The notes under the pieces: model-generated
Databases searched by the model: none
What the model was told of the DNA's origin: nothing
Seen by the model: only the letters and a program-made list of their open reading frames with translations
Translations under genes and position numbers: made by a program
Shown: positions 3,001 through 41,494 of the stretch, in pieces
Layout: each line of letters opens with the position of its first letter
How positions within the stretch are numbered: position 1 is the first letter of the stretch
NCBI GenBank assembly: GCA_977020255.1
Contig: CDROCS010002910.1
Span: 62,001-126,000, forward strand
Source: Obrimoposthia wandeli
Taxonomy: Eukaryota
Direction of reading: 5' to 3'
DNA: 64,000 nt

Positions 3001-6000
3001 TTCTGTAAATGATGCACCAATATTAGTTGCAGATACAAATACAACAAATGAAGACATCACTTTAACAGTTACAGCAGCAAATGGAGTTTTAAAGAATGAT
3101 TCTGACATAGAAAACGACGGATTAACAATAACTAAATTTACGATTGCAGGTACAGATTATCCAGTAAACACAACTGCAAATATTGCAGAAGGAACTTTAC
3201 AAATAAATACAAATGGAGATTATGTATTTACGCCAGCAACAAACTTTAATGGAGCGTATCCACAAGTTACTTATACTGCAACAGATGGTACAGATACATC
3301 AACAAGCACATTAGATATTACAGTAAATTCGGTAAATGATACACCAACATTAGTTGTAGATACAAATACAGTTGCAGAAGATGCAGTTTTAAATGTAACT
3401 GCTGTAAATGGAGTTTTAAATAACGATTCAGATTTAGATGGAGATACAATTATCGTTTCTCAATTTACAGTTGGTGGAACTACAGTAACAGTAGACCCAA
3501 CAAATGGTGGAGCAAGAATAATTCCAAATATTGGAACGATTAAAATGAATGCAGATGGAAGTTACGATTTTACACCAGTTGCTAATTTTAACGGAACAGT
3601 TCCAACAATTACATACACAGCAACAGATGGAACAAATACAGCAAATAGCACTTTAATTCTTTCAGTAACTGCAGTAAATGATAATCCTGTTGCAACAAAT
3701 GATACTTCAGCAACGGACCCTAATGTGGCAGTAAATATTCCTTTGTTAACAAATGATAATGATTTAGATGGAGACACTTTATCAATAAGTGCAATAACTG
3801 TTGCGCCAACAAAAGGTACAGCTGTAATTTTTGATAATGGTACACCAGGAGATACATCAGATGATGTTGTTACGTATACACCTCAAGCAGGTTTTAATAA
3901 CGGAACAGATACATTTACATATCAAATTTCTGATGGAAATGGAGGTTTTGATACAGCAGTTGTAACAATTGCTGTTCCTCAATCAGCATTTTCTCCAATA
4001 GCTAATCCAGATACAAACTCAACAAATGAAGAAGTAACTTTAACAGTTGCAGATGGAGATGCAAAAAGTTTAATTAAAAATGATACTGATGCAAATTTAG
4101 ATGCACTTACTGTTACAACTTTTGTAGTAGAAGGGACAACTTATAATGCAGGTCAAGAAGCAACTTTTGCAGACGGTTCTAAATTAACAATAAACGCAGG
4201 AGGTGGTTATGTATTTATTCCAGTAGAAAATTTTAATGGTTCTGTACCTCAAGTAAATTATACAATTACTGATGGACAAGGAACACCAAATGCAAGTAGT
4301 ACTTTAAACATAACTGTTAATCCAATAAATGATGCTCCAGTTGCAAACCCAGATACAAATACTATAGCAGAGGATACAACATTAACAGTAAATACAGCTA
4401 ATGGTTTATTAGACAATGATTCAGATATTGATGGAGATGCATTATCAGTAAAAGAATTTGAAATCGGAGGAACAACCTATCCAGCAGGAACAACAGCTAA
4501 TTTAACAGAAGGTTCTTTAACTATTAATGCAGATGGAAGTTACACTTTTACACCAGCAGCAGATTTTAACGGTTCTGTGCCACAAGTTACATATACTGCT
4601 AAGGATGGTACTGAAGATGTTACAAGTACATTAGATATTAGTGTTACTTCAGTAAATGATGCACCAGTTGCAGTAAATGATGCAGGAAATACAACTCTAG
4701 AAGATGCACCAATTACAATAAATGCAATTGGCGCAAATGATACAGATGATGGAAATGTAGTTACTTCATCAATTGTATTAATCGATCCAAATAATCCATC
4801 AAATAAAGCTATAGCAGGTAACACTTTAACGATACCAAATGTTGGTCAATATGTAGTTGATGGAACCACAGGAAATGTAACATTTACACCAGTAGCAAAT
4901 TATAATGGTTCTGCAGACATCAAGTATACAATTCAAGATAATGATGGTTTAGTTTCTGAAAATCAAGGAACAATAGAAATTACAGTTACTTCAGTAAATG
5001 ATGCACCAGTTGTTGCTTCAGAAACAAATAGTATAGATGAAGATACTCCATTAACAGTAACAGCAGCAAATGGATTATTAAATAATGATACTGATGCAGA
5101 TGGAGACCCTTTAACAATTTCAACATTTGTAATTAACGGAACAACTTATAACGCAGGAGATACAGCTAGTTTAACTGAAGGAACATTAGTTATTAATTCT
5201 GATGGAAGTTATGTATTTACTCCAACTTCAGACTTTAATGGTACTGTGCCACAAGTAACTTATAATGTTACAGACGGAACAGCAACAACTACAGGAACTT
5301 TAGACCTTACTGTAAATTCAATTAATGATGCACCAGTTGCTGTTAATGATTTAGGAAATAATACTCTAGAAGACACCCTAATTACAGTAAATGCAATTGG
5401 CGCAAATGATACAGATGATGGAAATGTAGTTCTTTCATCAATTATATTAATTGATCCAAATAATCCATCTAATACAGCAACAGTAGGTAACACTTTAACG
5501 ATACCAAATGTTGGACAATATGTAGTTGATGGAACTACAGGAAATGTAACATTTACACCAGATTCAAATTATAATGGACCAGCAAGTGTAAATTATACAA
5601 TAGAAGATAATAATGGATTAGTTTCTGCAAATCAAGGAACCATAGGTATTACAGTAACTGCAGTAAATGATGCGCCAGTAGCACAAGCAGATACCAACAC
5701 ATTATTAGAAGATACACCATTAGTTGTAAGTGCAGCCAATGGATTATTGAATAATGATACAGATACAGAGAACAATCCATTAACAGTAACACAGTTTACA
5801 GTTGGCGGAACAACATATCCAGCAGGAACAACAGTAACATTAACAGAAGGAACTTTAATAATAAATACAGATGGTAGTTATACATTTACACCAGCTACTG
5901 ATTATAATGGCCCAATTCCACAGATAACATATACTGTAAGTGATGGAACGAATACTGCAAATTCAAAATTAGATTTAAGTGTTACAGCAGTAAATGATGC

Positions 6001-9000
6001 ACCAGTTGCTGTTAATGATTTAGGGAATAATACTCTAGAAGACACACCAATTACGGTAAATGCAATTGGCGCAAATGATACAGATGATGGAAATGTAGTT
6101 CTTTCATCAATTATATTAATTGATCCAAATAATGCAGCAAATACAGCAACAGCAGGTAACACTTTAACGATACCAAATGTTGGTCAATATGTAGTTGATA
6201 CAACTACAGGAAATGTAACATTTACACCAGAAGCAAACTATAATGGATCAGCAAGTGTAAATTATACAATAGAAGATAATGATGGATTAGTTTCTGCAAA
6301 TCAAGGAACAATAGGCATTACAGTAACTGCAGTAAATGATGCACCAGTAGCCCAAGCAGATACAAACACATTATTAGAAGATACACCATTAGTTGTAAGT
6401 TCAGTAAATGGATTATTAAGTAATGATACAGATACAGAGAACAACCCATTAACAATAACACAGTTTACAGTAGGAGGCACAAGTTATCCTGCAGGAACAA
6501 CAGTAACGTTAACAGAAGGAACATTAAAAATCAATTCAGATGGTAGTTACACATTTACACCAGCTACTGATTATAATGGCCCAATTCCACAGATAACCTA
6601 TACAGTAAGTGATGGAACAAACACATCAAACTCAACATTAGATTTAAGTGTTACAGCAGTAAATGATGCACCAATAGTAGTTGCAGATACGAACACAATA
6701 GCAGAAGATACACCATTAACAGTATCATCAGCAAATGGTATTTTGAATAATGATTCAGATCCAGAGAATGATAGTTTAACATTAACAGGTTTACTGATAA
6801 ATGGAAATCCTGCAACGGTAGGCGCACCAATCTTATTAACAGAAGGAACACTTCAAATTAATAATGATGGAAGCTATACGTTTACACCAGCATCAAACTT
6901 TAATGGGAATGTTCCACAAGTTACGTATACAGTAAGTGATGGTACAGATACTGCAACAAGTACTCTAGATATTGCAGTAATTGCAGTAAATGATGCACCA
7001 GTAGCACAAGTAGATACGAATACATTATTAGAAGATACACCATTAGTTGTAAGTGCTGCCAATGGATTATTGAATAATGACACAGATACAGAGAACAATC
7101 CATTAACAGTAACACAGTTTACAGTAGGAGGAACAAGTTATCCTGCAGGAACAACAGTAACGTTAACAGAAGGGACATTAAAAATTAATTCAGATGGTAG
7201 TTATACATTTACACCAGCTACTGATTATAATGGTCCAATTCCACAGATAACGTATACAGTAAGTGATGGAACAAACACATCAAACTCAACATTAGATTTA
7301 AGTGTTACAGCAGTAAATGATGCACCAGTTGTAGTTAATGATTTAGGGAATAATACTCTAGAAGACACGCCAATTACAGTAAATGAAATTGGAGCAAATG
7401 ATACAGATGATGGAACCCTAAATATTTCAACAATTGTATTAATTGATTCAAATAATCCATCAAATACAGCAACAGCAGGTAATACTTTAACGATACCAAA
7501 TGTTGGACAATATGTAGTTGATGGAACTACAGGAAATGTAACATTTACACCAGATTCAAATTATAATGGCCCAGCAAGTGTAAATTATACAATAGAAGAT
7601 AATAATGGATTAGTTTCTGCAAATCAAGGAACCATAGGTATTACAGTAACTGCAGTAAATGATGCGCCAGTAGCACAAGCAGATACCAACACATTATTAG
7701 AAGATACACCATTAGTTGTAAGTGCTGCCAATGGATTATTGAATAATGATACAGATACAGAGAACAATCTATTAACAGTAACACAGTTTACAGTAGGAGG
7801 TACAAGTTATCCTGCAGGAACAACAGTAACGTTAACAGAAGGAACTTTACAAATTAATTCAGATGGTAGTTATACATTTACACCAACTACTGATTATAAT
7901 GGCCCAATTCCACAGATAACGTATACAGTAAGTGATGGAACAAACACATCAAACTCAACATTAGATTTAAGTGTTACAGCAGTAAATGATGCACCAGTTG
8001 TAGTTAATGATTTAGGGAATAATACTCTAGAAGACACCCCAATTACAGTAAATGCAATTGGAGCAAATGATACAGATGATGGAACCCTAAATATTTCAAC
8101 AATTGTATTAATTGATCCAAATAATCCATCAAATACAGCAACAGCAGGTAATACTTTAACGATACCAAATGTTGGACAATATGTAGTTGATGGAACTACA
8201 GGAAATGTAACATTTACACCAGATTCAAATTATAATGGCCCAGCAAGTGTAAATTATACAATAGAAGACAATGATGGATTAGTTTCTGCAAATCAAGGAA
8301 CCATAGGCATTACAGTAACTGCAGTAAATGATGCGCCAGTAGCACAAGCAGATACCAACACATTATTAGAAGATACACCATTAGTTGTAAGTGCAGCCAA
8401 TGGATTATTGAATAATGATACAGATACAGAGAACAATCCATTAACAGTAACACAGTTTACAGTAGGAGGTACAAGTTATCCTGCAGGAACAACAGTAACG
8501 TTAACAGAAGGAACTTTACAAATTAATTCAGATGGTAGTTATACATTTACACCAGCTACTGATTATAATGGCCCAATTCCACAGATAACCTATATAGTAA
8601 GTGATGGAACGAATACATCAAATTCAACATTAGATTTAAGTGTTACAGCAGTAAATGATGCACCAGTTGTAGTAGCAGATACAAATACTATTGCAGAAGA
8701 TACGCCATTAACAGTATCATCAGCAAATGGTATTTTGAATAACGATTCAGATCCAGAGAATGATAGCTTAACAGTAACTGGTTTACAGATAAATGGAAAT
8801 CCTGCAACAGTAGGAACACCAATCGTATTAACAGAAGGAACTCTTCAAATTAATAATGATGGAAGCTATACGTTTACACCTGCAGATAATTTTAATGGAA
8901 ATGTACCACAAGTTACTTATACTGTAAGCGATGGTACAGATACTGCAACAAGTACTTTAGATATTGCAGTAACACCAGTAAACGATTCACCAATTTCAAA

Positions 9001-12000
9001 TCCAGATATAGGTGTTGTAGATGAAGATGTTACTTTAACTGTAGATGCAGCAAACGGAATATTAGCAAACGATGTTGACCCAGATGGAGACCCAATAACA
9101 TTAAGTGAGTTTACTGTTGGAGGTGTAACATATCCTGCGGGAACAACAGTAACATTACCAGAAGGTAATATTACAATAAATGCTGATGGTAGTTATGTAT
9201 TTGTACCTGCACCTAATTTTTCAGGAACATTACCAACGGTTTATACTGCTACAGATAACTCAAATATTTCTAATAGCACATTAACAATTACTGTTAATCC
9301 AGTAAATGATGTGCCAGTAGCAAAAGATGATCTTTCATCAACAGATCCAGATGTTCCTGTAACAATAACTGTTCTGCCAAATGATTCAGATGTAGATGGA
9401 GATTCGCTTACAGTAAGTGCAATAAGTACACAACCTACAAATGGTACTGTGGCTATAAATTCAGATGGAACAATTACATATACTCCTAATCCAGGATTTA
9501 ATAATGGATCAGATACATTTGAATATCAAGTTTGTGATGGAAACGGATTATGTGATACTGCAAAAGTAACAGTAAGTGTACCTAAATCATTATTTCCACC
9601 TTCAGCAAATGAAGACACGGCAATTGCTTCAGAAGATTTAACTTTAACGGTTGATGCAACAAACGGATTATTAAGTAATGATACAGATCCTAATGCAGGA
9701 GATACTTTAACATTAATAAGCTTCCAAGTTAATGGAACAAGTTACAGCCCTGGAGATACAGTTAATCTTACTGAAGGAATGTTAACTATTAATGTGGATG
9801 GTAGTTATGTATTTATTCCAGCCGCTAATTATAACGGTTCTGTACCAGTTGTTAATTATACTGTTTCAGATGGATTAGCAACTGACTCAAGTACTTTAAC
9901 AATAGCAGTTACTTCTGTTAATGATGTACCTGTTGCAAATCCGGATACAAATGTAACTTTAGAAGATACTCCACTAAACGTTAATGCAACAACTGGTTTA
10001 TTGGTAAACGATTCAGATGCAGACGGAACAACTTTAGCACTAACACAATTTGAAATTAATGGAACGATTTATTCAGCTGGTCAAACAGCAGTATTAACAG
10101 AAGGAACATTAACTATTAATGGTGATGGTAGTTACGTATTCAATCCAGCACAAGATTATTTAGGAACTGTTCCACAAGCTACATATACTGTTTTTGATGG
10201 TATTGTAAGTGCTACAAGTACATTAGATATTTCTGTAACTGGCGTAAATGATACACCTGTGGTAGTAAGTGATTCAGGAAATACAACTCCAGAAGACACA
10301 CCAGTTACAATAGCAACAATTACTGCAAATGATACAGATGATGGTACTATAGATCCATCAACAATTACATTAATAGATCCAAACAACCCATCAAATACAG
10401 GTAATTCTACAACTCCATTAGTAATTCCTGGAGTTGGTACTTATACAGTTGATACAGCAGGAAATGTAATTTTTACACCAGAGCTAAACTTTAATGGACC
10501 TGCAAATGTAAATTATACAGTAAAAGATGATAGCGGATTAACCTCAAATGTTGGTACAATAGGTATTTCTGTTACACCAGTAAATGATACACCAACCGCA
10601 GTTTCAGATATAAGTACAATACAAGAAGACACACCATTAGCAGTAACAGCTGCAAACGGATTATTAGCAAACGATTCAGATGTAGAAGGAACACCATTAA
10701 CGGTAACACAGTTTACTATTAACGGAACAAACTATCCTGCAGGAACAACAGTTACATTAACAGAAGGTGTATTAGAGATAAATGCAGACGGTAGTTATAT
10801 ATTTAACCCAGCACCAAATTATAATGGAGCAGTTCCACAAGTAACTTATACGGTAAGTGATGGAGTAAATATTACAACAAGTACATTAGATATTTCTGTA
10901 ACAGTAGTAAATGATACACCTATAGTAGTAAATGATTTAGTAAGTGTTTTAGAAGATACACCAGTAACTATTCCTACTATAACAGCAAATGATACAGATG
11001 ATGGTTCTATAGATGTATCAACCATAACATTAATTGATCCAAATAATCCATCAAATATGGGTAATTCTACAACTCCATTAGTAATTCCTGGAGTTGGAAC
11101 CTATACAGTAGATACATCAGGAAATGTAATTTTTACACCAGAACAAAACTTTAATGGACCTGCAAATGTAAATTATACAGTAAAAGATAATGACGGAGTT
11201 ACCTCAAATGTTGGTACAGTTGGTATCTCAGTTACACCAGTAAATGATGTTCCAAATGCAGTTGCAGATACAAACACTTTACAAGAAGACACACCATTAG
11301 CAGTAACTGCTGCAGACGGATTATTAACAAACGATTCAGACGTAGAAGGAACTCCATTAACAGTAACACAATTTACCATTAACGGAACAAACTATCCTGC
11401 AGGAACGACAGTTACATTAACAGAAGGTGTATTAGAGATAAATGCAGACGGTAGTTATATATTTAACCCAGCACCAAATTATAATGGAGCAGTTCCACAA
11501 GTAACTTATACGGTAAGTGATGGAGTAAATATTACAACAAGTACATTAGATATTTCTGTAACTGGCATAAATGATACACCTGTGGTAGTAAGTGATTCAG
11601 GAAATACAACTCCAGAAGACACACCAGTTACAATAGCAACAATTACTGCAAATGATACGGATGATGGTTCTATAGACCCATTAACAATTACATTAATAGA
11701 TCCAAACAACCCATCAAATACAGGTAATTCAACAACACCATTAGTAATTCCTGGAGTTGGTACTTATACAGTTGATACATCAGGAAATGTAATTTTTACA
11801 CCAGAACCAAACTTTAATGGACCTGCAAATGTAAATTATACAGTAAAAGATAATGACGGAGTTACCTCAAATGTTGGTACAGTTGGTATCTCAGTTACAC
11901 CAGTAAATGATGTTCCAGATGCAGTTGCAGATACAAACACTTTACAAGAAGACACACCATTAGTAGTAAGTGCTGCAAACGGATTATTAGCAAACGATTC

Positions 12001-33689: not shown

Positions 33690-36600
33690 TTATTCTAAGA
33701 TTATTTTTTTGTTCAATTTCCCGTTTTTAGTTTCTAACTTAACAAGATAAACTCCTTTAGCTAATTTTGGTAAGGAAATATCTTTAACTCCATTAGATGT
33801 AAAAGAAGAATTTAGAACTTCTTTTCCTAAGAGTGAGAATAGCTTAAAAGAAACATCATTTTTAGATAAACCAGCAATTCTTAATGTAGCGTTATCAAGT
33901 TTATAGATGCTTATGTTTTTTAAAACTAAGTTTTTATCAACACTAAGTGCACTATTGGTTGTATGCATATAAAAACGACCAATTCCGTTTAAAGCTTCTT
34001 TTAAAGTTATCTTATAAGTACTATTTACTTCATCTAAACGTGTAAAAGTATTAGTTACTCTATCTTCTAAAAATAGTTTCAAATCAGAATCAAAATTAGA
34101 AACATTTAATGAAAAAGTAATTTCTTTACCACTTTCTGTATTTACACCAACAGGAACTATCATATTTTCAAAACCTGTATTTGGTAAAGCTTGTATAGCA
34201 AAATCTACTCCATCACTATTACTAACTAAATGCGTAAACACTCTAAAGTTATTACTTACTCCAGTAAAAACACCAACATCAGACCCCACATCTAAACCAG
34301 TTGTTCTATTTTGTATATATCTAATTTTTGTTGATGAGGTATTAGTTCCTTCATCAATTTTTAATATCATTTCAGGATAACTTGTATTATTCTTTAAAAA
34401 GATATTTCCTGTTTGATGCGTTTGCATTGCTTCAGTAAAACTTGCAGAAGTTCCTCCACCATCAGGTGCATGTACAAAGAATGCTTGCCCAGGAGCAATA
34501 AAGAAATCGTCATCTACAGATTTAACATCATAAGGAGTACTTCCGTTCCATAGGTAAACACCAGATTTCGCTGGGTCTAACGTACTTGCATCAATATTTA
34601 CTCTTAAAAAAGAATTAGTTTCATCTGTACTACTTCCTCCTTTTAGAGCAGCAGTATAAGGGCTACTAATTAAATTCCATCTATTTCCAGTAGGGTCATC
34701 TCCACCATCTGTAATAGCAATTGTTTCTCCTGCATTATTTACGTTTAAAGTACCTGTAAAATCTAAAGTACCAGCAGTTGTTTTTTTAACTGAATATCCC
34801 TTTGCTTTGGTGAAATTACCAGCTGCACCAATATTTCCAGTTGTGTAGTAACTCCAACGAGAAGCAGATACTTCCGTATTATCATAGAGTGCAATAGATT
34901 TATTAGTAGTTGTTCCACTAGTTAAAAGAGAACCAGAAAAGCCATTTATATCTTGTCCATTTACTGGAGCTCCAACTAAATGCCATCCTTCTGTTCCAAC
35001 ACCAGAGGTTGTTAAATATCTTTTATACGTTACATTCCCTGTAGCAGTTCCTTTTACAATTAAAGAACCATTTGTGGTGGCATCAGAATCTATATTTAAT
35101 GTTCCACCTTGGGTAAGGTTTCCATTTACAGTTAATGAGTTACCAGTTTGAATATTTAGCGTTCCTGTTATATTTAAATTGTTAATAGTAACAGAACTAA
35201 TATTTAGCTCAGGACTATTAGGAATAACAACATTATCTGAACTTATTGGTATTCTAGCTAAAGACCAATTACCTCCAACAGACCAATTACCACCTGCAGA
35301 TAAATAAGTATTGGTTTGATTTGCTTCTGATGTAAAACTTAAGTCTGTTGTAGCTGAAATACCTGCATAGTTATTGTTTGCAGCATCTTTAAAAGCAGTA
35401 TTATCTACTTGAACATAGTACTCAGTATTTAAATCTAAGTCAGATGTAGGATTAATTGTAGCTTTAGTTGTTGTTATTGAAACAGAACCAGAAGTAACTG
35501 CAATAGTTTCTACAGTACTGTTATCAGATGTTTTTTTGATAATAATATTTCCACTAGTTCCTTTGCTGATATTTTCAGAAAAAGTTAATTCTATGTTATT
35601 ACTAATAACAACATTAGTAGCATTATCTAAAGGAGAAGTTAGAGTTAAAGTTGGTAAAACACCATCAATTAATAAGGCCTTATTATCTCCTAAAGAGTTT
35701 GCTGCTCCTGGAGTTGGTAAAGTCAATGTTGCATCTTTATTACCAGAATCTCTTATACTTGTTCCTGCTGTTAATGAGTTTGTTGCAACATAATCTAAAT
35801 CTGCACTAGTATCTCCTGCTTGTACATTATAATTAAATTGTATAGTATTTGTTCCACTACCTGTACCATTATAGTTTATGGTTCTATTTGTTGTACCAGT
35901 TTCTAATGTAATTTGTGGTGTACCAGTTACAGTAACATTTTCATTAAAAGTTACGGTTACAATAACATTGTCGCCTGCTTTATAAGTTCCGTTTGCAGTT
36001 GTTGCACTTACGCTAGTTACTGTTGGTGCTACTGCACTTGAAATAACAGTAGTTCCATTGTTTGTATCTGTGTCTGTGCCATCATTAATAACAACTGTAA
36101 AAGTTGTAGTTTCTGATGTTGAACTTCTATTATCTGTAGGGTTAAAACTTAACGCTCTTAATTTTGCTTGTAAGTCTGCAGTTGTAGTACTTGCAAGAGC
36201 ATAAGGTCCTGTACCTGTTAAACCTGTACCAGATAAAACACCTTTAGCATTGTTGTCTAAAGTAATAGTTGCAGAAACATTATCTCCATCTGCATCTGAT
36301 GTTGTTATTGAAGAAAAAGGATTTAATGTAGCAGTATCATTTACATTTTGTCCTGCAGATGTGCCTCCAATTGTTGGTGCAGTGTTTGCAACATTTCCTG
36401 TTAGTTTAAGTTCGTCTATAGCAAATTCTTCACTCCCGGAATTAGCTCTTATTGTAATTCTGATATTTAATGTAGTTCCAGTACTTGCTAAAGTTTTTGT
36501 AATTTTTTGAAATGTTAGCCCGAGTGTAACAGTTCCGTTAGATAAACTATGGCCAGAAGCTGGACCATCACGTAGAAACTCTGTAACCTTATCAAATCCT

Positions 36601-37031
36601 CCTCCATTTATTTGAGTCTCGATTAATATTCTATCTGCTGCATCCCAAGCGAAAACATCAGCCGCTAAATCTATTGATAATTCCAGACCAGTATAACCTG
36701 TAATATCTATGCTAGACCATGTTAAAGATACTTCATCTGGAAATGATGACGCTCCTGCGTCTAAATCTTCTCCCATCAAATAACTCCCTGTATTCCCCGT
36801 ATACACAGGAAATCCCATAGCTGTTGGGGCCCCGTCAAAATCGGTATTAGTTCCAGCAGGATCATAGATTCCAAAATAATCACTAGAAGCACCTGTGAAA
36901 AATGGACTACTTTTGGTAAAACCAGAATCATTATTAAAGGATTCTAATAAGAGTGTTGTTTGAGAAAAAACTTCATTTTTAAATAATAAAGAAAATAATA
37001 AAGAAAATAAGATGAGTGTAATTTTTTTCAT
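33690..37031 (-). CDS. Secreted Ig-like-domain protein with T9SS type A CTD
   Basis: Signal peptide, N-terminal jelly-roll-like domain, Ig-like segments (APTVTSVS...YKAGD..VTVTFNE; LTFSENI..G...I.IKK..D...E.I). CTD ..FSLLGKEVL...LAKGVYLVKLET.NG..NKKIILE. Confidence 0.85.
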   Translation of the reverse strand: MKKITLILFSLLFSLLFKNEVFSQTTLLLESFNNDSGFTKSSPFFTGASSDYFGIYDPAGTNTDFDGAPTAMGFPVYTGNTGSYLMGEDLDAGASSFPDEVSLTWSSIDITGYTGLELSIDLAADVFAWDAADRILIETQINGGGFDKVTEFLRDGPASGHSLSNGTVTLGLTFQKITKTLASTGTTLNIRITIRANSGSEEFAIDELKLTGNVANTAPTIGGTSAGQNVNDTATLNPFSSITTSDADGDNVSATITLDNNAKGVLSGTGLTGTGPYALASTTTADLQAKLRALSFNPTDNRSSTSETTTFTVVINDGTDTDTNNGTTVISSAVAPTVTSVSATTANGTYKAGDNVIVTVTFNENVTVTGTPQITLETGTTNRTINYNGTGSGTNTIQFNYNVQAGDTSADLDYVATNSLTAGTSIRDSGNKDATLTLPTPGAANSLGDNKALLIDGVLPTLTLTSPLDNATNVVISNNIELTFSENISKGTSGNIIIKKTSDNSTVETIAVTSGSVSITTTKATINPTSDLDLNTEYYVQVDNTAFKDAANNNYAGISATTDLSFTSEANQTNTYLSAGGNWSVGGNWSLARIPISSDNVVIPNSPELNISSVTINNLNITGTLNIQTGNSLTVNGNLTQGGTLNIDSDATTNGSLIVKGTATGNVTYKRYLTTSGVGTEGWHLVGAPVNGQDINGFSGSLLTSGTTTNKSIALYDNTEVSASRWSYYTTGNIGAAGNFTKAKGYSVKKTTAGTLDFTGTLNVNNAGETIAITDGGDDPTGNRWNLISSPYTAALKGGSSTDETNSFLRVNIDASTLDPAKSGVYLWNGSTPYDVKSVDDDFFIAPGQAFFVHAPDGGGTSASFTEAMQTHQTGNIFLKNNTSYPEMILKIDEGTNTSSTKIRYIQNRTTGLDVGSDVGVFTGVSNNFRVFTHLVSNSDGVDFAIQALPNTGFENMIVPVGVNTESGKEITFSLNVSNFDSDLKLFLEDRVTNTFTRLDEVNSTYKITLKEALNGIGRFYMHTTNSALSVDKNLVLKNISIYKLDNATLRIAGLSKNDVSFKLFSLLGKEVLNSSFTSNGVKDISLPKLAKGVYLVKLETKNGKLNKKIILE

Positions 37032-37122: not shown

Positions 37123-37752
37123 TTAACTTCTTGGTGGATAAAGACCTTCCATACATATTATATAATTAAGACCTAAACTTGGTTGTATATTGCTAAAAGC
37201 AACATTATTTCCTGTCATACCAACTGTTACGTCACCGCCTGTTGCAGTAATAGCTACTGGTGCAGTAAAAGGTTTTAAAGTTGTATCTGCAGCCTCAGAG
37301 CTATAAGCATTTACTACGTTTCCATTTTTTATTACTTCTTGAGTCGCAAAAACAGAACCAACACCTGGTACAGAAGTATCAGCAGAATCAGCTACCGCAG
37401 GTACAGAAACAGTCGCTTCTGCTGTTGCTGTAATACCTGTAACTAGAGCAGTATGGTTATGAGCTGGTAAATTTTTTGTAATTAGAGTTGTCGTTTCATT
37501 ACCCTCTTTCTCTCCTAATCTATAAGCTGATAATCCTGGTCCTGCTGAATTTCCTCCAGAGTTTACAGGTACTCTACCTCTTAAATCGGGTAAAGCAAAT
37601 GTAGTTCTTCCATCTCCACCATAAGTGGTTCCTAAAATTGAAAATAAAGATTGGTTTTGTGCGATTGGTAATAATTGCCCATTGCAGTAAGCCCAGTTTC
37701 TTGGAGCAAAATTTCCTGCAAACATTTTAATAATTCCGATGTACTCATCCAT
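37123..37752 (-). CDS. Phage tail-collar domain protein (MdpB/'microcystin-dependent protein' family)
   Basis: YIG.IKMFAGNFAP.NWAYCNGQLLPI.QNQ.LFSILGTTYGGDGRTTFALPDLRGR, LPAHNH, and C-terminal NIQPSLGLNYIIC.EGLYP.RS. Confidence 0.92.
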   Translation of the reverse strand: MDEYIGIIKMFAGNFAPRNWAYCNGQLLPIAQNQSLFSILGTTYGGDGRTTFALPDLRGRVPVNSGGNSAGPGLSAYRLGEKEGNETTTLITKNLPAHNHTALVTGITATAEATVSVPAVADSADTSVPGVGSVFATQEVIKNGNVVNAYSSEAADTTLKPFTAPVAITATGGDVTVGMTGNNVAFSNIQPSLGLNYIICMEGLYPPRS

Positions 37753-37784: not shown

Positions 37785-37881
37785 CAAATGTAGTTGTAAC
37801 AAATGATGAGGTTTAGAGTGTTAAATACTGAAAGTAAAAAAGGGTATAAATACTTATTTTATAAGTATTTATACCCTTTTT
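37785..37881 (-). promoter_or_regulatory. Tail-collar promoter (-7 TACATTTG) with upstream 21-bp perfect inverted repeat holding two 6-4-6 sites
   Basis: Minus-strand TACATTTG at 37785-37792. AAAAAGGGTATAAATACTTAT-TTT-ATAAGTATTTATACCCTTTTT at 37837-37881, which can also act as the response-regulator terminator. Confidence 0.6.
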
Positions 37882-37899: not shown

Positions 37900-38580
37900 C
37901 TACAGGTTAAAATCTGGCGTAATTTCTATTAATTTTTTTTGAATTCCATAAATAACTAAACCAGCTACATTTTTAGATTGCGTTTTTAAAAGAAGGTTAT
38001 TTCTATGCCCCTCTACCGTTCTTGGGCTTATAAAAAGTTTGTCGGCAATTTCTGCAGTTGTTTTTTGAGCACAAATTAATTCTAAAACATCTATTTCTCT
38101 TTTAGACAGTAGTTTTTTATCTAAATCGCTTTTTATACGTTTTCCACTAGATGATATAATATTCTCATGTATAATTGTTAATACTTTTTCATCATAATAA
38201 AAACCCTTATCATACACTTCATTAATTGTATGAACTACCGTTTTTGGGCTTGTGTTTTTAAGAAGATAAGAAGAAGCGCCAACATCTATCATGTTAGTAA
38301 TAAAAGATTTACCACCATAACTAGTAAGTGCAATTATTTTTATTTCTGGATATTTTTTATGAATAATTTTAGTAGCTTCTACACCATTAACTTCTGGCAT
38401 ATTTAAATCCATTAAAATTACATCTGGGAGCTCTTCTGTTTTATTAATAAAGGTTATTAATTCTTTGCCATTTTCTGCTTCATAAATGATGTTAAAATTG
38501 TCTTCTCTTTCTAATAAAAAACGAATTCCACTTCTAAAAAGCTGCTCGTCATCGGCAATTATTATATTAATTTGTTTCAT
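37900..38580 (-). CDS. NarL/FixJ (LuxR-HTH) family response regulator
   Basis: IIIADDE, DVILMDLNMP, ALTSY, YLLKN receiver motifs. LSKREIDVLELIC...T.EIADKLFISPRTVEGHRNNL HTH. Confidence 0.95.
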   Translation of the reverse strand: MKQINIIIADDEQLFRSGIRFLLEREDNFNIIYEAENGKELITFINKTEELPDVILMDLNMPEVNGVEATKIIHKKYPEIKIIALTSYGGKSFITNMIDVGASSYLLKNTSPKTVVHTINEVYDKGFYYDEKVLTIIHENIISSSGKRIKSDLDKKLLSKREIDVLELICAQKTTAEIADKLFISPRTVEGHRNNLLLKTQSKNVAGLVIYGIQKKLIEITPDFNL

Positions 38581-38593
38581 AATTTGGGGGCTA

Positions 38594-39385
38594 TTATATT
38601 ACAATGAAAATTTTAAAACCTTTACCTATTTCACTTCCAATACTATATTTTCCATTTAATAGGGAAACTCTACTTTCTATATTTTTCATTCCAAGTCCTT
38701 TCTTATTATCAATATTATTAGAATTAAAACCAATACCATTATCAGTATAATTAAAAATTAATTGATTGTTTTTTAAAGAAATGTTTATAGTACTATTATT
38801 TGCTTTTCCGTGTCTTACAGAGTTGTTAATTAACTCTTGCGTAATTCTAAAAAGGTGTAATTCGTTTTGTGGTATTAAATGTTTTTTTGGATAGTTAATA
38901 GTATATTCAATATTAATTTTTCTGCTATTATTAAATTCATCTGCCAATTCTTCTACTGCATCTTTAAACCCAAATTCTTCAAGAATTGGGGGCAATAAAT
39001 TATGGGCAATTTTTCTTGCACTTTCTAGGGTTTTCTCGGTTGCTTTTAAAATACCGTTATTAACTATTTTAAATTCTTCTGGTGTTAATTCTCCATCTTT
39101 TAAAAGATTTGCATTCAGGTTAATCACATTTAACTTAGAGCTAATGTCGTCATGTAAATCTTGTGCAATACGTTTGCGCTCTTTTTCTTGAGTTATAATA
39201 ATAGATTGTATAATTTCTTTTTGATGCGTTATTTCGAGATTTTTTTTCTCAAGTTCTTTTTCCACTATTTTTTTTCTTGAGAAAAAGAAAAATAATAGTA
39301 AAGAAATTCCCATAATTAGGAGTAACAGAACACTTATTATAACTACAGCAATCACTTGGTCTTGTTTAGCAACTAATTCTTCCAT
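38594..39385 (-). CDS. HisKA_3 sensor histidine kinase with one TM and no evident sensory domain
   Basis: TM at about aa 12-36. QEKERKRIAQDLHDD H-box, FRITQELINNSVRHG N-box, DNGIGF and GLGMKNI G-boxes. Confidence 0.93.
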   Translation of the reverse strand: MEELVAKQDQVIAVVIISVLLLLIMGISLLLFFFFSRKKIVEKELEKKNLEITHQKEIIQSIIITQEKERKRIAQDLHDDISSKLNVINLNANLLKDGELTPEEFKIVNNGILKATEKTLESARKIAHNLLPPILEEFGFKDAVEELADEFNNSRKINIEYTINYPKKHLIPQNELHLFRITQELINNSVRHGKANNSTINISLKNNQLIFNYTDNGIGFNSNNIDNKKGLGMKNIESRVSLLNGKYSIGSEIGKGFKIFIVI

Positions 39386-39407: not shown

Positions 39408-39523
39408 CAAAATTACGGAAAAATATTTTTACACAAGATAATGCTAACAAAGTGAAATAAAAAGCCTGAAGTGAAAATCAGGGGTTTATACTTGTTTTTG
39501 TATTCTTAGTATAAACCCCTGAT
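39408..39523 (-). promoter_or_regulatory. HK/RR promoter (TTG-18-TAATTTTG) and upstream inverted repeat with two 6-4-6-like sites
   Basis: Minus-strand TAATTTTG at 39408-39415 and TTG at 39434-39436. ATCAGGGGTTTATACT...AGTATAAACCCCTGAT at 39477-39523. Confidence 0.55.
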
Positions 39524-39525
39524 TA

Positions 39526-40167
39526 TTATCTCTTTTTTAAATGTATGTGTTTTCTAAAATTTTTATACCATTCTATAAAAACCATAATTTGAAAAATTAA
39601 ATATAGGAATGCATTTATATCCCAAACATATAATTTAAGTTCTCTAGAATCTATGTTTCCTAAAGTGAAAATTAATGTACTACAAAGTGTATAAACAAAG
39701 AAACCAGAGTTAAAGTAAATGTATTTTTTGTCTTTATAGTCATCTATCTTTTTTACAAAAAAGTAAAAACTATAAATTAACAATGGTATGGATGTTAAAA
39801 CAATTTCTAACTGATTCCATCTTTTAAATGCTTCAGGATAATTATATAGATATATAATAAAATACAAAGCAATTACAAGAGTTAAAATCCAATTTAAGAT
39901 CTTAAATTTTTTGAAACTCTGTAATGTTGAAAAGAACAGACTTAAAAAAATAAACTGACCTATAAAAAAATAATGACTTAAAAATAAGTTGTTTATTCCT
40001 TTTGTACTAAAATTATTAGAAACTAATTGAATAACAGAACAAAGCACTAAATACATAATAAAGTATTTTATAGCTTTGTCTTTTTTAGTATAACTTAGAG
40101 TAAATACTACTGTATTTAGAATTAAAAAAAAGTACCCTGCATTTATTATGAAATCATCGAAGATCAT
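39526..40167 (-). CDS. Multi-pass (about 6-7 TM) membrane protein, paralog 2
   Basis: Hydrophobic segments throughout. Shares NL(F/H)L.H..FIGQF.FLS.FF, E.V.TSIPL..YS, FNSG.F.Y..CSTLIF and W..NA.LYLI.QI.V...WYKNFRK with 40295-40927. Confidence 0.8.
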   Translation of the reverse strand: MIFDDFIINAGYFFLILNTVVFTLSYTKKDKAIKYFIMYLVLCSVIQLVSNNFSTKGINNLFLSHYFFIGQFIFLSLFFSTLQSFKKFKILNWILTLVIALYFIIYLYNYPEAFKRWNQLEIVLTSIPLLIYSFYFFVKKIDDYKDKKYIYFNSGFFVYTLCSTLIFTLGNIDSRELKLYVWDINAFLYLIFQIMVFIEWYKNFRKHIHLKKR

Positions 40168-40294: not shown

Positions 40295-40927
40295 CTATTC
40301 ATTAATCTTTCTAAAGTTTTTATACCAATCTATAGAAACTAAAATTTGATAAATCAGGTAAAGGATTGCATTAAAGAGCCAAATATAAATTTTTATGTCC
40401 GATTTTAAACTACCAGCAACAAAAATTAAAGTACTGCATGTAATGTAAAGGAACAAACCTGAGTTAAAAAAAAGAAATTTTTTGTTATCACTATCTATTC
40501 TCTTTACTAAGAAAATTAAACTATAAGCAATTAATGGAATAGAAGTAACTACAACTTCAAAAATATTATGTTCAGTTAAAAATTCTGGATAGATAAAATA
40601 GCAGACACCTAAAGAAAACAATGCCATAAATAAATAGATTCTTATAATATTAGAAAGTAACTTATTTTTAAACTCTAGTATAAAAAAGAAACTTAAAAAA
40701 AGAAACTGACCAATAAAGTAAAAGTGCGTCAAATGAAGGTTTGACTCTTTTAGACTATGAAGGTAATTCATTCTTAACTGAATGATTAAAACATACAATA
40801 AGTAAAATGCAATAATTTTAAAAGCTACCGTTTTTTTACGGTAGCTTTTAAAAAAAAGAAATGTATTTAAAATTAAAATAATATACCCTAAATCAGCTAT
40901 TATATTAAAAATTTCTTTAGAATCCAT
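40295..40927 (-). CDS. Multi-pass (about 6-7 TM) membrane protein, paralog 1
   Basis: Same conserved motifs as 39526-40167; starts 1 bp after the PCPxxC gene stop. Confidence 0.8.
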   Translation of the reverse strand: MDSKEIFNIIADLGYIILILNTFLFFKSYRKKTVAFKIIAFYLLYVLIIQLRMNYLHSLKESNLHLTHFYFIGQFLFLSFFFILEFKNKLLSNIIRIYLFMALFSLGVCYFIYPEFLTEHNIFEVVVTSIPLIAYSLIFLVKRIDSDNKKFLFFNSGLFLYITCSTLIFVAGSLKSDIKIYIWLFNAILYLIYQILVSIDWYKNFRKINE

Positions 40928-40928
40928 T

Positions 40929-41312
40929 TTATTGCATTAAAGGACTCGTGAAGTCACATGAATCTGGACATGGTTTAGTTGCATCAAAAATAGCACCACT
41001 ATCAGCATCTAGAGTTTCACCATCATTAGAAGAAATCATGTCTTTTCCATTTTTATCTACGCCTACAAACATTAATTTTTCTTCAAAAATAGTTTCTCCT
41101 GTTTTTTTATCTTCAGATTTTTTAACGCCTAAATATCCTCTAACACTTACAGCACCTTCTTCAATTACTTCTTTTAAGTCTATTAAAGGAATTGTAAAAG
41201 CTCTACAATCGAAGTATTTATTATAAGAAGCTTCATCATCTCTCCATTCTGTAGCCCATTTTTGAGCTTTTTGTAAGCTGATTTTGTTAATTTTTTTTGG
41301 TTGTTTTTCCAT
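40929..41312 (-). CDS. Small cytoplasmic hypothetical protein with C-terminal PCPxxC motif
   Basis: 127 aa, no signal peptide. ISL..AQKWA.EWR, RAF.IP..DL, VRGYLG, EKLMFVGVD..GKD and D.TKPCPDSCD.TSPL. From recollection this family recurs next to two-component genes in Bacteroidota; not verified here. Confidence 0.8.
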   Translation of the reverse strand: MEKQPKKINKISLQKAQKWATEWRDDEASYNKYFDCRAFTIPLIDLKEVIEEGAVSVRGYLGVKKSEDKKTGETIFEEKLMFVGVDKNGKDMISSNDGETLDADSGAIFDATKPCPDSCDFTSPLMQ

Positions 41313-41380
41313 GTTTAATAGTATTTAAGTTTATAAATAATTTGGGTTAGGCTATAAATCTAAATAAAAATAAAGAAAAA

Positions 41381-41461
41381 GGAGGGTTAATACTTCTATT
41401 TATATTGATAAACACGTGTTTTTACCTGTTTTTTTAATCTGTTTTTAGGTGTTTTCCTTTA
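41381..41461. promoter_or_regulatory. Phased array of 6-4-6 pseudo-palindromes upstream of the PCPxxC gene
   Basis: GGAGGG-TTAA-TACTTC (41381), CACGTG-TTTT-TACCTG (41413), TAGGTG-TTTT-CCTTTA (41446); spacings 32 and 33 bp. Confidence 0.5.
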
Positions 41462-41494
41462 TTAGGTGTTTAAAAAAAAGTGTATTTTCGTTAC

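Follow-up and report, generated by a model that had tools for sequence, protein, structure and literature searches.

A family of Cys-tailed proteins encoded at the head of a conserved two-component cassette in Bacteroidota

What does a small soluble protein do at the head of a signaling operon? In the window analyzed here, i.e., the whole stretch of 64,000 nucleotides, a gene for a 127-aa protein (gene S, product S) precedes genes for polytopic membrane proteins, a histidine kinase, and a response regulator, and two of the Cys residues of S lie at its extreme C-terminus. The preliminary description of this locus had offered two proposals, namely, that the Cys-containing tail forms a disulfide or metal site that reports the cytoplasmic state to the membrane/kinase complex, or that it is processed and exported as a small cyclic peptide. 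Accordingly, gene S, its relatives, and its genomic surroundings were analyzed computationally.

Gene S and its operon

The features of the locus are listed below, in the direction of transcription of the operon.

start at 41480, (+): uvrC, divergent from gene S
41313-41479, (-): upstream intergenic (promoter) region of 167 nt seen in the sequence, common to gene S and the divergent uvrC
41410-41421: perfect 12-nt palindrome AAACACGTGTTT seen in the sequence, approximately 100 nt upstream of the S start
40929-41312, (-): gene S, first gene of the operon, 127-aa ORF with an ATG start and with homologs in sequence and profile searches
40932-40991, (-): codons 108-127 of gene S, the signature tail IFDATKPCPDSCDFTSPLMQ, with C115 at 40968-40970 and C119 at 40956-40958
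40295-40927, (-): 7-TM receptor-like membrane protein, paralog 1, 210 aa, starting 1 nt past the S stop; N-out/C-in topology by the positive-inside rule, with conserved polar residues inside the helices
40177-40290, (-): decayed 3' third of a second S gene, recognized by translation; internal stop, PCP changed to PHT
39526-40167, (-): second of the 7-TM receptor-like paralogs, a membrane protein of 213 aa that matches the whole PF07695 model (7TMR-DISM_7TM) below threshold (E 0.0023)
38594-39385, (-): histidine kinase, 263 aa; one N-terminal TM helix followed by HisKA_3 and HATPase_c, without an input domain and without Cys
37900-38580, (-): NarL/LuxR-type response regulator, 226 aa (Response_reg, E 2e-25; GerE, E 4e-14)
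37838-37880, (-): terminator-like hairpin closing the operon, a 20-bp stem followed by a T run
37123-37752, (-): phage-tail-collar-domain protein, 209 aa (PF07484, E 2e-29), a candidate output gene

The 127-aa ORF without a signal peptide given in the preliminary description was confirmed in its extent, its ATG start, and its hydrophilic N-terminus. The open frame continues for just 4 codons upstream of the ATG (stop-to-stop segment 40932-41324), and the N-terminal hydropathy reached a maximum of only -0.73 in a 12-residue window, which is strongly hydrophilic. Thus, a hidden signal peptide was excluded, and S is a cytoplasmic protein. Since homologs were found down to E 5e-71 and profile matches came from 709 clusters at 50% identity, S is not a chance ORF. 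It contains exactly three Cys residues, C36, C115, and C119, two of them at the C-terminal end as had been reported, and its last 16 residues read TKPCPDSCDFTSPLMQ. The tail motif is C-P-x-x-C, i.e., a CX3C spacing, to which the CXXC of the thioredoxin type does not apply.

The coupling of gene S to a membrane protein, which had also been described, was evident at the gene junction, where the S stop TAA (40929-40931) is followed after 1 nt by the ATG at 40927 of the 210-aa polytopic protein. Similarly, the position of S as the operon head agreed with the same-strand genes lying downstream of it and with the strong hairpin that marks the operon end after the regulator gene. The palindrome AAACACGTGTTT in the upstream region may be a putative autoregulatory site for the NarL-type regulator. 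A sigma-70 promoter scan, a type of scan that does not cover Bacteroidota promoters, was uninformative, with 25 sites against 28 expected. Within the operon, the second 7-TM gene and the kinase gene are separated by 140 nt, and this stretch contains a weak hairpin with a 5-bp stem (39465-39482) that could serve for attenuation within the operon or for processing. Downstream of the operon, next to the tail-collar gene, a 1113-aa Big_5 protein with a T9SS sorting domain is encoded at 33690-37031 (-).

The partner proteins of S were also characterized. The 7-TM protein has seven hydrophobic segments and a charge pattern that fits an N-out/C-in orientation; its helices contain conserved polar residues (N21, Q50, N63, S67, H68, Q74, N121, Y161, S165, N186, and Q194). 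Two distant 7-TM members, the second being a homolog from locus L084, matched PF07695 (7TMR-DISM_7TM) over the full model length with E-values of 0.0023 and 0.0055 and scores of 18.3 and 17.1 bits, below the 29-bit Pfam gathering threshold, and no peptidase family in Pfam or NCBIfam was matched. Accordingly, the 7-TM protein is read, from sequence features, as a receptor-type 7-TM module split from its kinase. An inverted topology was considered for the 7-TM partner of an exported S (L084) and was rejected, as its positive-inside pattern was the same as that of the window protein. Approximately 10 residues of the kinase are external, and the protein crosses the membrane once and is free of Cys. 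No conserved cytoplasmic Cys is present in either of the two partners, the kinase and the 7-TM protein. Hence, the thiols of S would act within S or its dimer, without mixed disulfides to the partners.

The S family and its gene order across genomes

For the window S, no family was found in Pfam-A or NCBIfam at E-values up to 1, and none in PADLOC. The same was true of 65 diverse S members searched against Pfam, while four further members gave nothing meaningful in NCBIfam, and the tandem and exported forms described below also had no curated-family match. A word search returned 46 close relatives, of which those named by organism were from Polaribacter and all those with a protein name were "hypothetical protein". 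When a profile of the close relatives was compared with 1.84 billion cluster representatives (clusters at 50% identity), 709 proteins were matched at E ≤0.001 and 222 at E ≤1e-10. PDB sequences searched with a profile yielded matches at chance level only, the best with an E-value of 0.065. Likewise, when the best 8000 word-sharing candidates within a window of approximately 125-399 aa were scored with an 80-sequence profile, solely single and tandem S proteins were found, with no fusions of S to other domains. In the literature on CPxxC motifs, on Flavobacterium tail collar and two-component systems, and on 7TMR-DISM with HisKA_3, no description of the S family or of its cassette was found. 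The S family itself is thus classed as new, and its cassette is classed as a two-component system with accessory subunits.

A genome scan confirmed 223 loci, and the 80 that were kept were all from Bacteroidota, including Flavobacterium, Polaribacter, Aquimarina, Salegentibacter, Mesonia, Echinicola, Crocinitomicaceae, and Chitinophagales. One contig with a full cassette (L054, CALRQL020000005.1, 42% G+C) was labelled as an Agrobacterium MAG and was probably misbinned from Bacteroidota. In the 80 genome loci, the genes followed a conserved order on one strand, namely, S, a membrane protein of approximately 211 aa, a kinase of approximately 263 aa, and a regulator of approximately 225 aa, with median intergenic gaps of 9, -4, and 3 nt along the cassette. 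In 86 of 87 sequence sources, the gene next after S was the 7-TM gene according to a stop-to-stop HMM scan, which removed apparent exceptions arising from start-codon artefacts. The kinase followed in 78 and the regulator in 75 of the approximately 80 genome loci, the remainder being cut contigs. The cassette occurred in at least three flanking contexts, beside dnaB, tail-collar genes, or uvrC, among Flavobacterium, Polaribacter, Aquimarina, Echinicola, Crocinitomicaceae, and Chitinophagales. Because the surroundings differ in this way, the linkage is not explained by simple inherited synteny.

The reverse search gave a comparable result. A metagenome scan seeded with the 7-TM protein returned 80 loci, 67 of them with enough upstream DNA, and S lay directly upstream in 62 of the 67 (59 by script; L155, L156, and L164 by inspection). 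The five exceptions consisted of two sets of membrane-kinase(-regulator) genes without a detectable S (L124 and L125) and three orphan 7-TM genes (L139, L144, and L158). These orphan paralogs (in L139 at 4001-4672) lie beside a gldC-like gene without S, kinase, or regulator, which points to a second, non-cassette branch of the 7-TM family. Across approximately 160 loci, no S gene was found away from the module. The obligate co-occurrence and co-orientation with a kinase-regulator pair that characterize an accessory subunit were therefore found with either S or the 7-TM protein as the seed of the search, and the association of S with the membrane/kinase complex that the preliminary description had suggested gained strong support from this phylum-wide gene order in both search directions.

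Other genes recurred near the cassette. Tail-collar genes, often in two or three tandem copies, were located within 6 kb of it in 31 of approximately 80 genome loci (including Flavobacterium, Polaribacter, and Echinicola). The frequent tail-collar-domain and T9SS cargo neighbors hint at the possible targets of the system. In 41 genome loci, mostly of Flavobacterium, the regulator gene was followed by a gene for a protein of approximately 420 aa with a signal peptide (L004 at 8700-9977 and homologs), for which no Pfam, NCBIfam, or PADLOC match was obtained.

Conserved tail, structural models, and variant forms of S

The tail is the best-conserved block of S, and the consensus of residues 108-125 is I-Y-D-F-T-x-P-C-P-x-x-C-D-x-x-S-P-L. 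In an alignment of 205 single-domain members, 13 of 18 positions in the tail (108-125) reached at least 2.9 bits, compared with 19 of 107 in the body (1-107), and C115, P116, and C119 were kept in 99%, 100%, and 98% of the members, respectively; the tail conservation in this alignment is somewhat inflated, as the genome loci had been retrieved by the pattern IYDFTxPCP. The profile-search representatives are not subject to that bias (their query profile did, however, contain the tail), and they agreed with this result, with CPxxC kept in 144 of 150 and three of the six exceptions being fragments. Thus, C115 and C119 proved to be conserved in homologs and to lie in the densest block of the protein, as the Cys-based proposals of the preliminary description require. 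C36 was not conserved, Leu being the commonest residue at its position in the 205 members, while W23, R58, Y60, V83, D91, and D110 were near-invariant in the same alignment. Rare full-length S proteins lack one or both Cys residues, namely, the first S of L101 (PSPPNKGD...), P0052, P0118, and P0128. As these full-length Cys-less members occur in otherwise normal operons, the Cys pair is dispensable for the persistence of S in its operon.

To place these residues in a fold, structure models were examined. The monomer, modelled from a shallow alignment, reached a mediocre pLDDT of 71, and fold searches with it returned nothing in Foldseek at E ≤0.001 and no VIA Z-score above 3.3. A naturally tandem protein (P0051) was modelled with AF2 from an 80-sequence alignment with a pLDDT of 91.7, a pTM of 0.87, and tail values of 85-95. 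In each half of this model, a helix-strand-helix segment leads into a long beta-hairpin, after which come short strands and finally the tail, where S-P-L forms a short helix. From the clamp-like matches described below, the two S domains are taken to form one pseudo-twofold sheet with the helices on one face, which offers a plausible picture of an S homodimer. From the tandem S-S proteins and this model, S is probably dimeric.

The tandem model had no Foldseek match. In VIA, sliding-clamp/PCNA domains made up its top 40 matches, with Z-scores of 4-6.3 and rmsd values of 3.2-4 Å over approximately 110 residues across both halves, the two halves jointly superposing on single clamp domains, which are themselves pseudo-twofold sheets. 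A sliding-clamp fold for S was rejected, as the best Z-score of 6.3 (rmsd 3.2 Å, 112 residues) is below 8, a range that the VIA guidance assigns to shared arrangement alone, and was obtained solely with the tandem taken as one unit, which reflects an arrangement and not homology. S also does not belong to the thioredoxin-like CXXC proteins, as the spacing is CX3C and neither Foldseek nor VIA matched a thioredoxin fold with either model.

Duplication of S was visible in the window itself. The 127-bp gap between the two 7-TM paralogs translates to the last third of a second S, reading KDMISSKDGFTLVV, a stop, SDPIYNFSRPHTEFCDTKTPLN, and a stop, with an internal stop and with the first Cys lost; approximately half of its residues match residues 90-126 of S. 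Comparable layouts were found in three other loci. In L096, the order is S, 7-TM, relic S (3791-3979, Cys lost), 7-TM, a lipoprotein form of S, kinase, and regulator; in L101, it is S, 7-TM, relic S (3768-3977, Cys lost), 7-TM, kinase, and regulator; and in L159, S is followed by two 7-TM genes, the kinase, and the regulator. Together with the window, these layouts show that S plus the 7-TM protein is the duplicating unit, with several units per kinase and with the extra S tending to decay. In the window, L096, and L101, the second S copy decayed while the second 7-TM gene stayed intact; thus, a 7-TM protein perhaps does not strictly need an S of its own.

Fused and exported forms were also detected. 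Cytoplasmic tandem S-S proteins of 221-228 aa take the place of S at the operon head, with both tails retained in full. A Sec or lipoprotein signal was present in 26 of 144 representatives (approximately one in six), on single or double domains. Approximately half of these exported forms end 1-5 residues past the second Cys, and 16 of the 26 carry CPPxC. Exported S was encoded beside cytoplasmic S in L001, L006, L041, L045, L068, and L096, and alone at the operon head for P0104 (L084/L085) and P0130. In the former six loci, the exported protein is a two-domain lipoprotein encoded within the operon (L006 at 6301-7047, L001 at 9349-10125, and L096 at 5049-5819, besides L041, L045, and L068). As lipoprotein and cytoplasmic S occur in the same operon, a single system is predicted to have the S domain on each side of the inner membrane. 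On a tree of S domains, parsimony gave 21 changes between cytoplasmic and exported states, a number not relied on since a domain of 110 residues gives a poorly resolved tree.

Role of S and comparison with known systems

On this evidence, it is highly probable that S belongs, as a dedicated component, to a conserved four-protein signaling module. Its most likely place there is that of a soluble partner of the 7-TM protein, and we infer that it contacts the 7-TM protein or the kinase physically. A more specific proposal, in which S is the dimeric soluble subunit of a split sensor formed with the 7-TM protein, kinase, and regulator and its CX3C pairs serve as a thiol or metal site, has in our judgment about an even chance of being correct. 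The kinase, which has no input domain of its own, would obtain its signal from the 7-TM protein within the membrane, and each 7-TM protein would work with a cognate S whose gene immediately precedes its own and is translated in tandem with it. In the S dimer, two beta-sheets would be joined edge to edge, and each monomer would contribute one rigid P-C-P-x-x-C-D-x-x-S-P-L tail, giving four thiols per dimer. These thiols could form inter-chain disulfides or bind a metal, and their state would alter how S engages the 7-TM/kinase complex and would thereby shift the balance between kinase and phosphatase activity toward the regulator. The direction of signaling in this scheme is likewise proposed.

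A redox or metal switch built from the Cys pair is plausible. The idea draws on the extreme conservation of the pair in a cytoplasmic protein, the dimer and tandem evidence, the preferential oxidation of synthetic CPXXC peptides to inter-motif dimers (PMC11379947), and the lack of a conserved Cys in the partners. Counting against it are the Cys-less survivors and the exported forms. As the Cys pair of an exported S would simply be oxidized in the periplasm, a structural staple or a ligand-binding input domain fits those forms as well as a redox switch does.

S could be a constitutive ligand-binding or scaffold subunit whose Cys pair is merely a structural zinc or disulfide staple fixing the tail, a possibility that we hold to be real and rather unlikely. 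The signal would then be a small molecule or a partner bound by W23, R58, Y60, D91, and D110, and the lineage would determine whether this takes place in the cytoplasm or the periplasm. Such a role would suit the occurrence of the S domain with and without export signals in the same type of operon, the survival of Cys-less members, the near-invariant polar residues that the body has of its own, and a tail that is modelled as packed and not floppy. However, a purely structural disulfide is not expected to be 98-99% conserved in the reducing cytoplasm, where most members reside, and neither Foldseek nor VIA found a ligand pocket or a known binding fold with either model. It is improbable that S stands outside the signal input altogether, as a co-transcribed effector or housekeeping protein (e.g., a thiol enzyme or stress protein) under autoregulation of the system. 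Its invariant Asp, Arg, Tyr, and Cys residues could, from their conservation, be catalytic, but S keeps a fixed place right in front of the 7-TM gene (at a distance of 0-9 nt in most loci), duplicates and decays together with that gene, is absent beside the orphan 7-TM paralogs that have no kinase, and did not occur outside the module in the approximately 160 loci.

The processed and exported cyclic peptide of the preliminary description was poorly supported, and we regard it as very improbable. S would be the precursor of an exported, possibly cyclic, agr-like peptide, its Cys tail being processed and exported by the 7-TM protein and the peptide being sensed by the kinase module. The operon order does resemble agrBDCA, in that a small ORF with Cys is grouped with genes for a polytopic membrane protein, a kinase, and a regulator, and the tail combines fixed scaffold residues with variable x positions. 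However, S is a folded domain of 100-135 aa that is conserved over its full length and is modelled confidently with its tail included (pLDDT 92), and tandem two-domain and Sec/lipoprotein forms would be senseless as precursors. The neighbors that recurred were the 7-TM protein, kinase, regulator, tail-collar proteins, and an uncharacterized 419-aa protein; processing or export enzymes as expected beside an AgrD or RiPP precursor were not recurrent, and the conserved module contains no peptidase, ABC exporter, radical-SAM enzyme, or other modifying enzyme. Moreover, the single-TM kinase, with its approximately 10 external residues, has no extracytoplasmic part, and the 7-TM protein weakly matches a receptor-type family and no peptidase family.

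Returning to the split sensor, it may have a wider form. A widespread four-component architecture of Bacteroidota, in which modular input units of an S dimer plus a 7-TM protein, sometimes several of them, serve one sensor-less HisKA_3 kinase and the twin-CX3C tail is an inter-subunit thiol or metal switch, can be put forward only tentatively. If it were true, the redox or metal state would be readable in the cytoplasm or in the periplasm, with the S domain deployed on either side by lineage. An unannotated family of approximately 700 clusters at 50% identity is, in any case, the obligate first gene of a four-gene cassette across Flavobacteriia, Cytophagia, and Chitinophagia, and two near-invariant Cys residues, natural Cys-less variants, tandem fusions, and exported variants provide experimental handles on it.

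Several known systems resemble the cassette in part. The likeness to agrBDCA is one of layout only, in which four genes encode a small Cys-containing product and a polytopic membrane protein of approximately 200 aa along with the kinase and the regulator. Whereas the agr precursor has approximately 46 aa, S is a folded domain; the kinase is a single-TM HisKA_3 protein and not a polytopic HPK10 receptor; the regulator is of the NarL type and not LytTR; and the 7-TM protein has no peptidase-family match in Pfam or NCBIfam. HbpS-SenS-SenR of Streptomyces is similar in concept, as a separate small protein reports the redox state to a sensor kinase. HbpS is secreted, haem-binding, and octameric, and to our knowledge it has no sequence or fold relation to S. 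Twin CX3C proteins and synthetic CPXXC motifs share the Cys spacing of S, and their relevance is by chemical analogy only, since they are intermembrane-space chaperones or designed peptides, whereas S is a cytoplasmic bacterial protein.

Closer parallels are found among receptor-type and LiaFSR systems. Two distant 7-TM proteins of the module give sub-threshold matches over the whole 7TMR-DISM_7TM model and have the same N-out/C-in topology; unlike in 7TMR-DISM receptors, whose 7-TM module is fused to kinases or cyclases, they are separate polypeptides without the DISMED extracellular domain, and they score 18 bits against the cut-off of 29. As in LiaFSR-type three-component systems, where an intramembrane-sensing HisKA_3 kinase acts together with an accessory membrane protein, a HisKA_3 kinase with nearly no sensing domain is combined with a NarL/LuxR regulator and with accessory protein(s) encoded directly upstream in the operon, and the window kinase matched the Strep_LiaS model at E 5e-26, which is sub-threshold. 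However, the accessory membrane protein here is 7-TM receptor-like and not LiaF, and the soluble Cys-tailed S has no counterpart in Lia systems. An S-like protein is absent from LiaFSR, 7TMR-DISM, and agrBDCA. The two-component systems of Bacteroidota are poorly understood, their kinases without a sensing domain being a standing puzzle, and the S cassette is a concrete, testable candidate for the input to such kinases.
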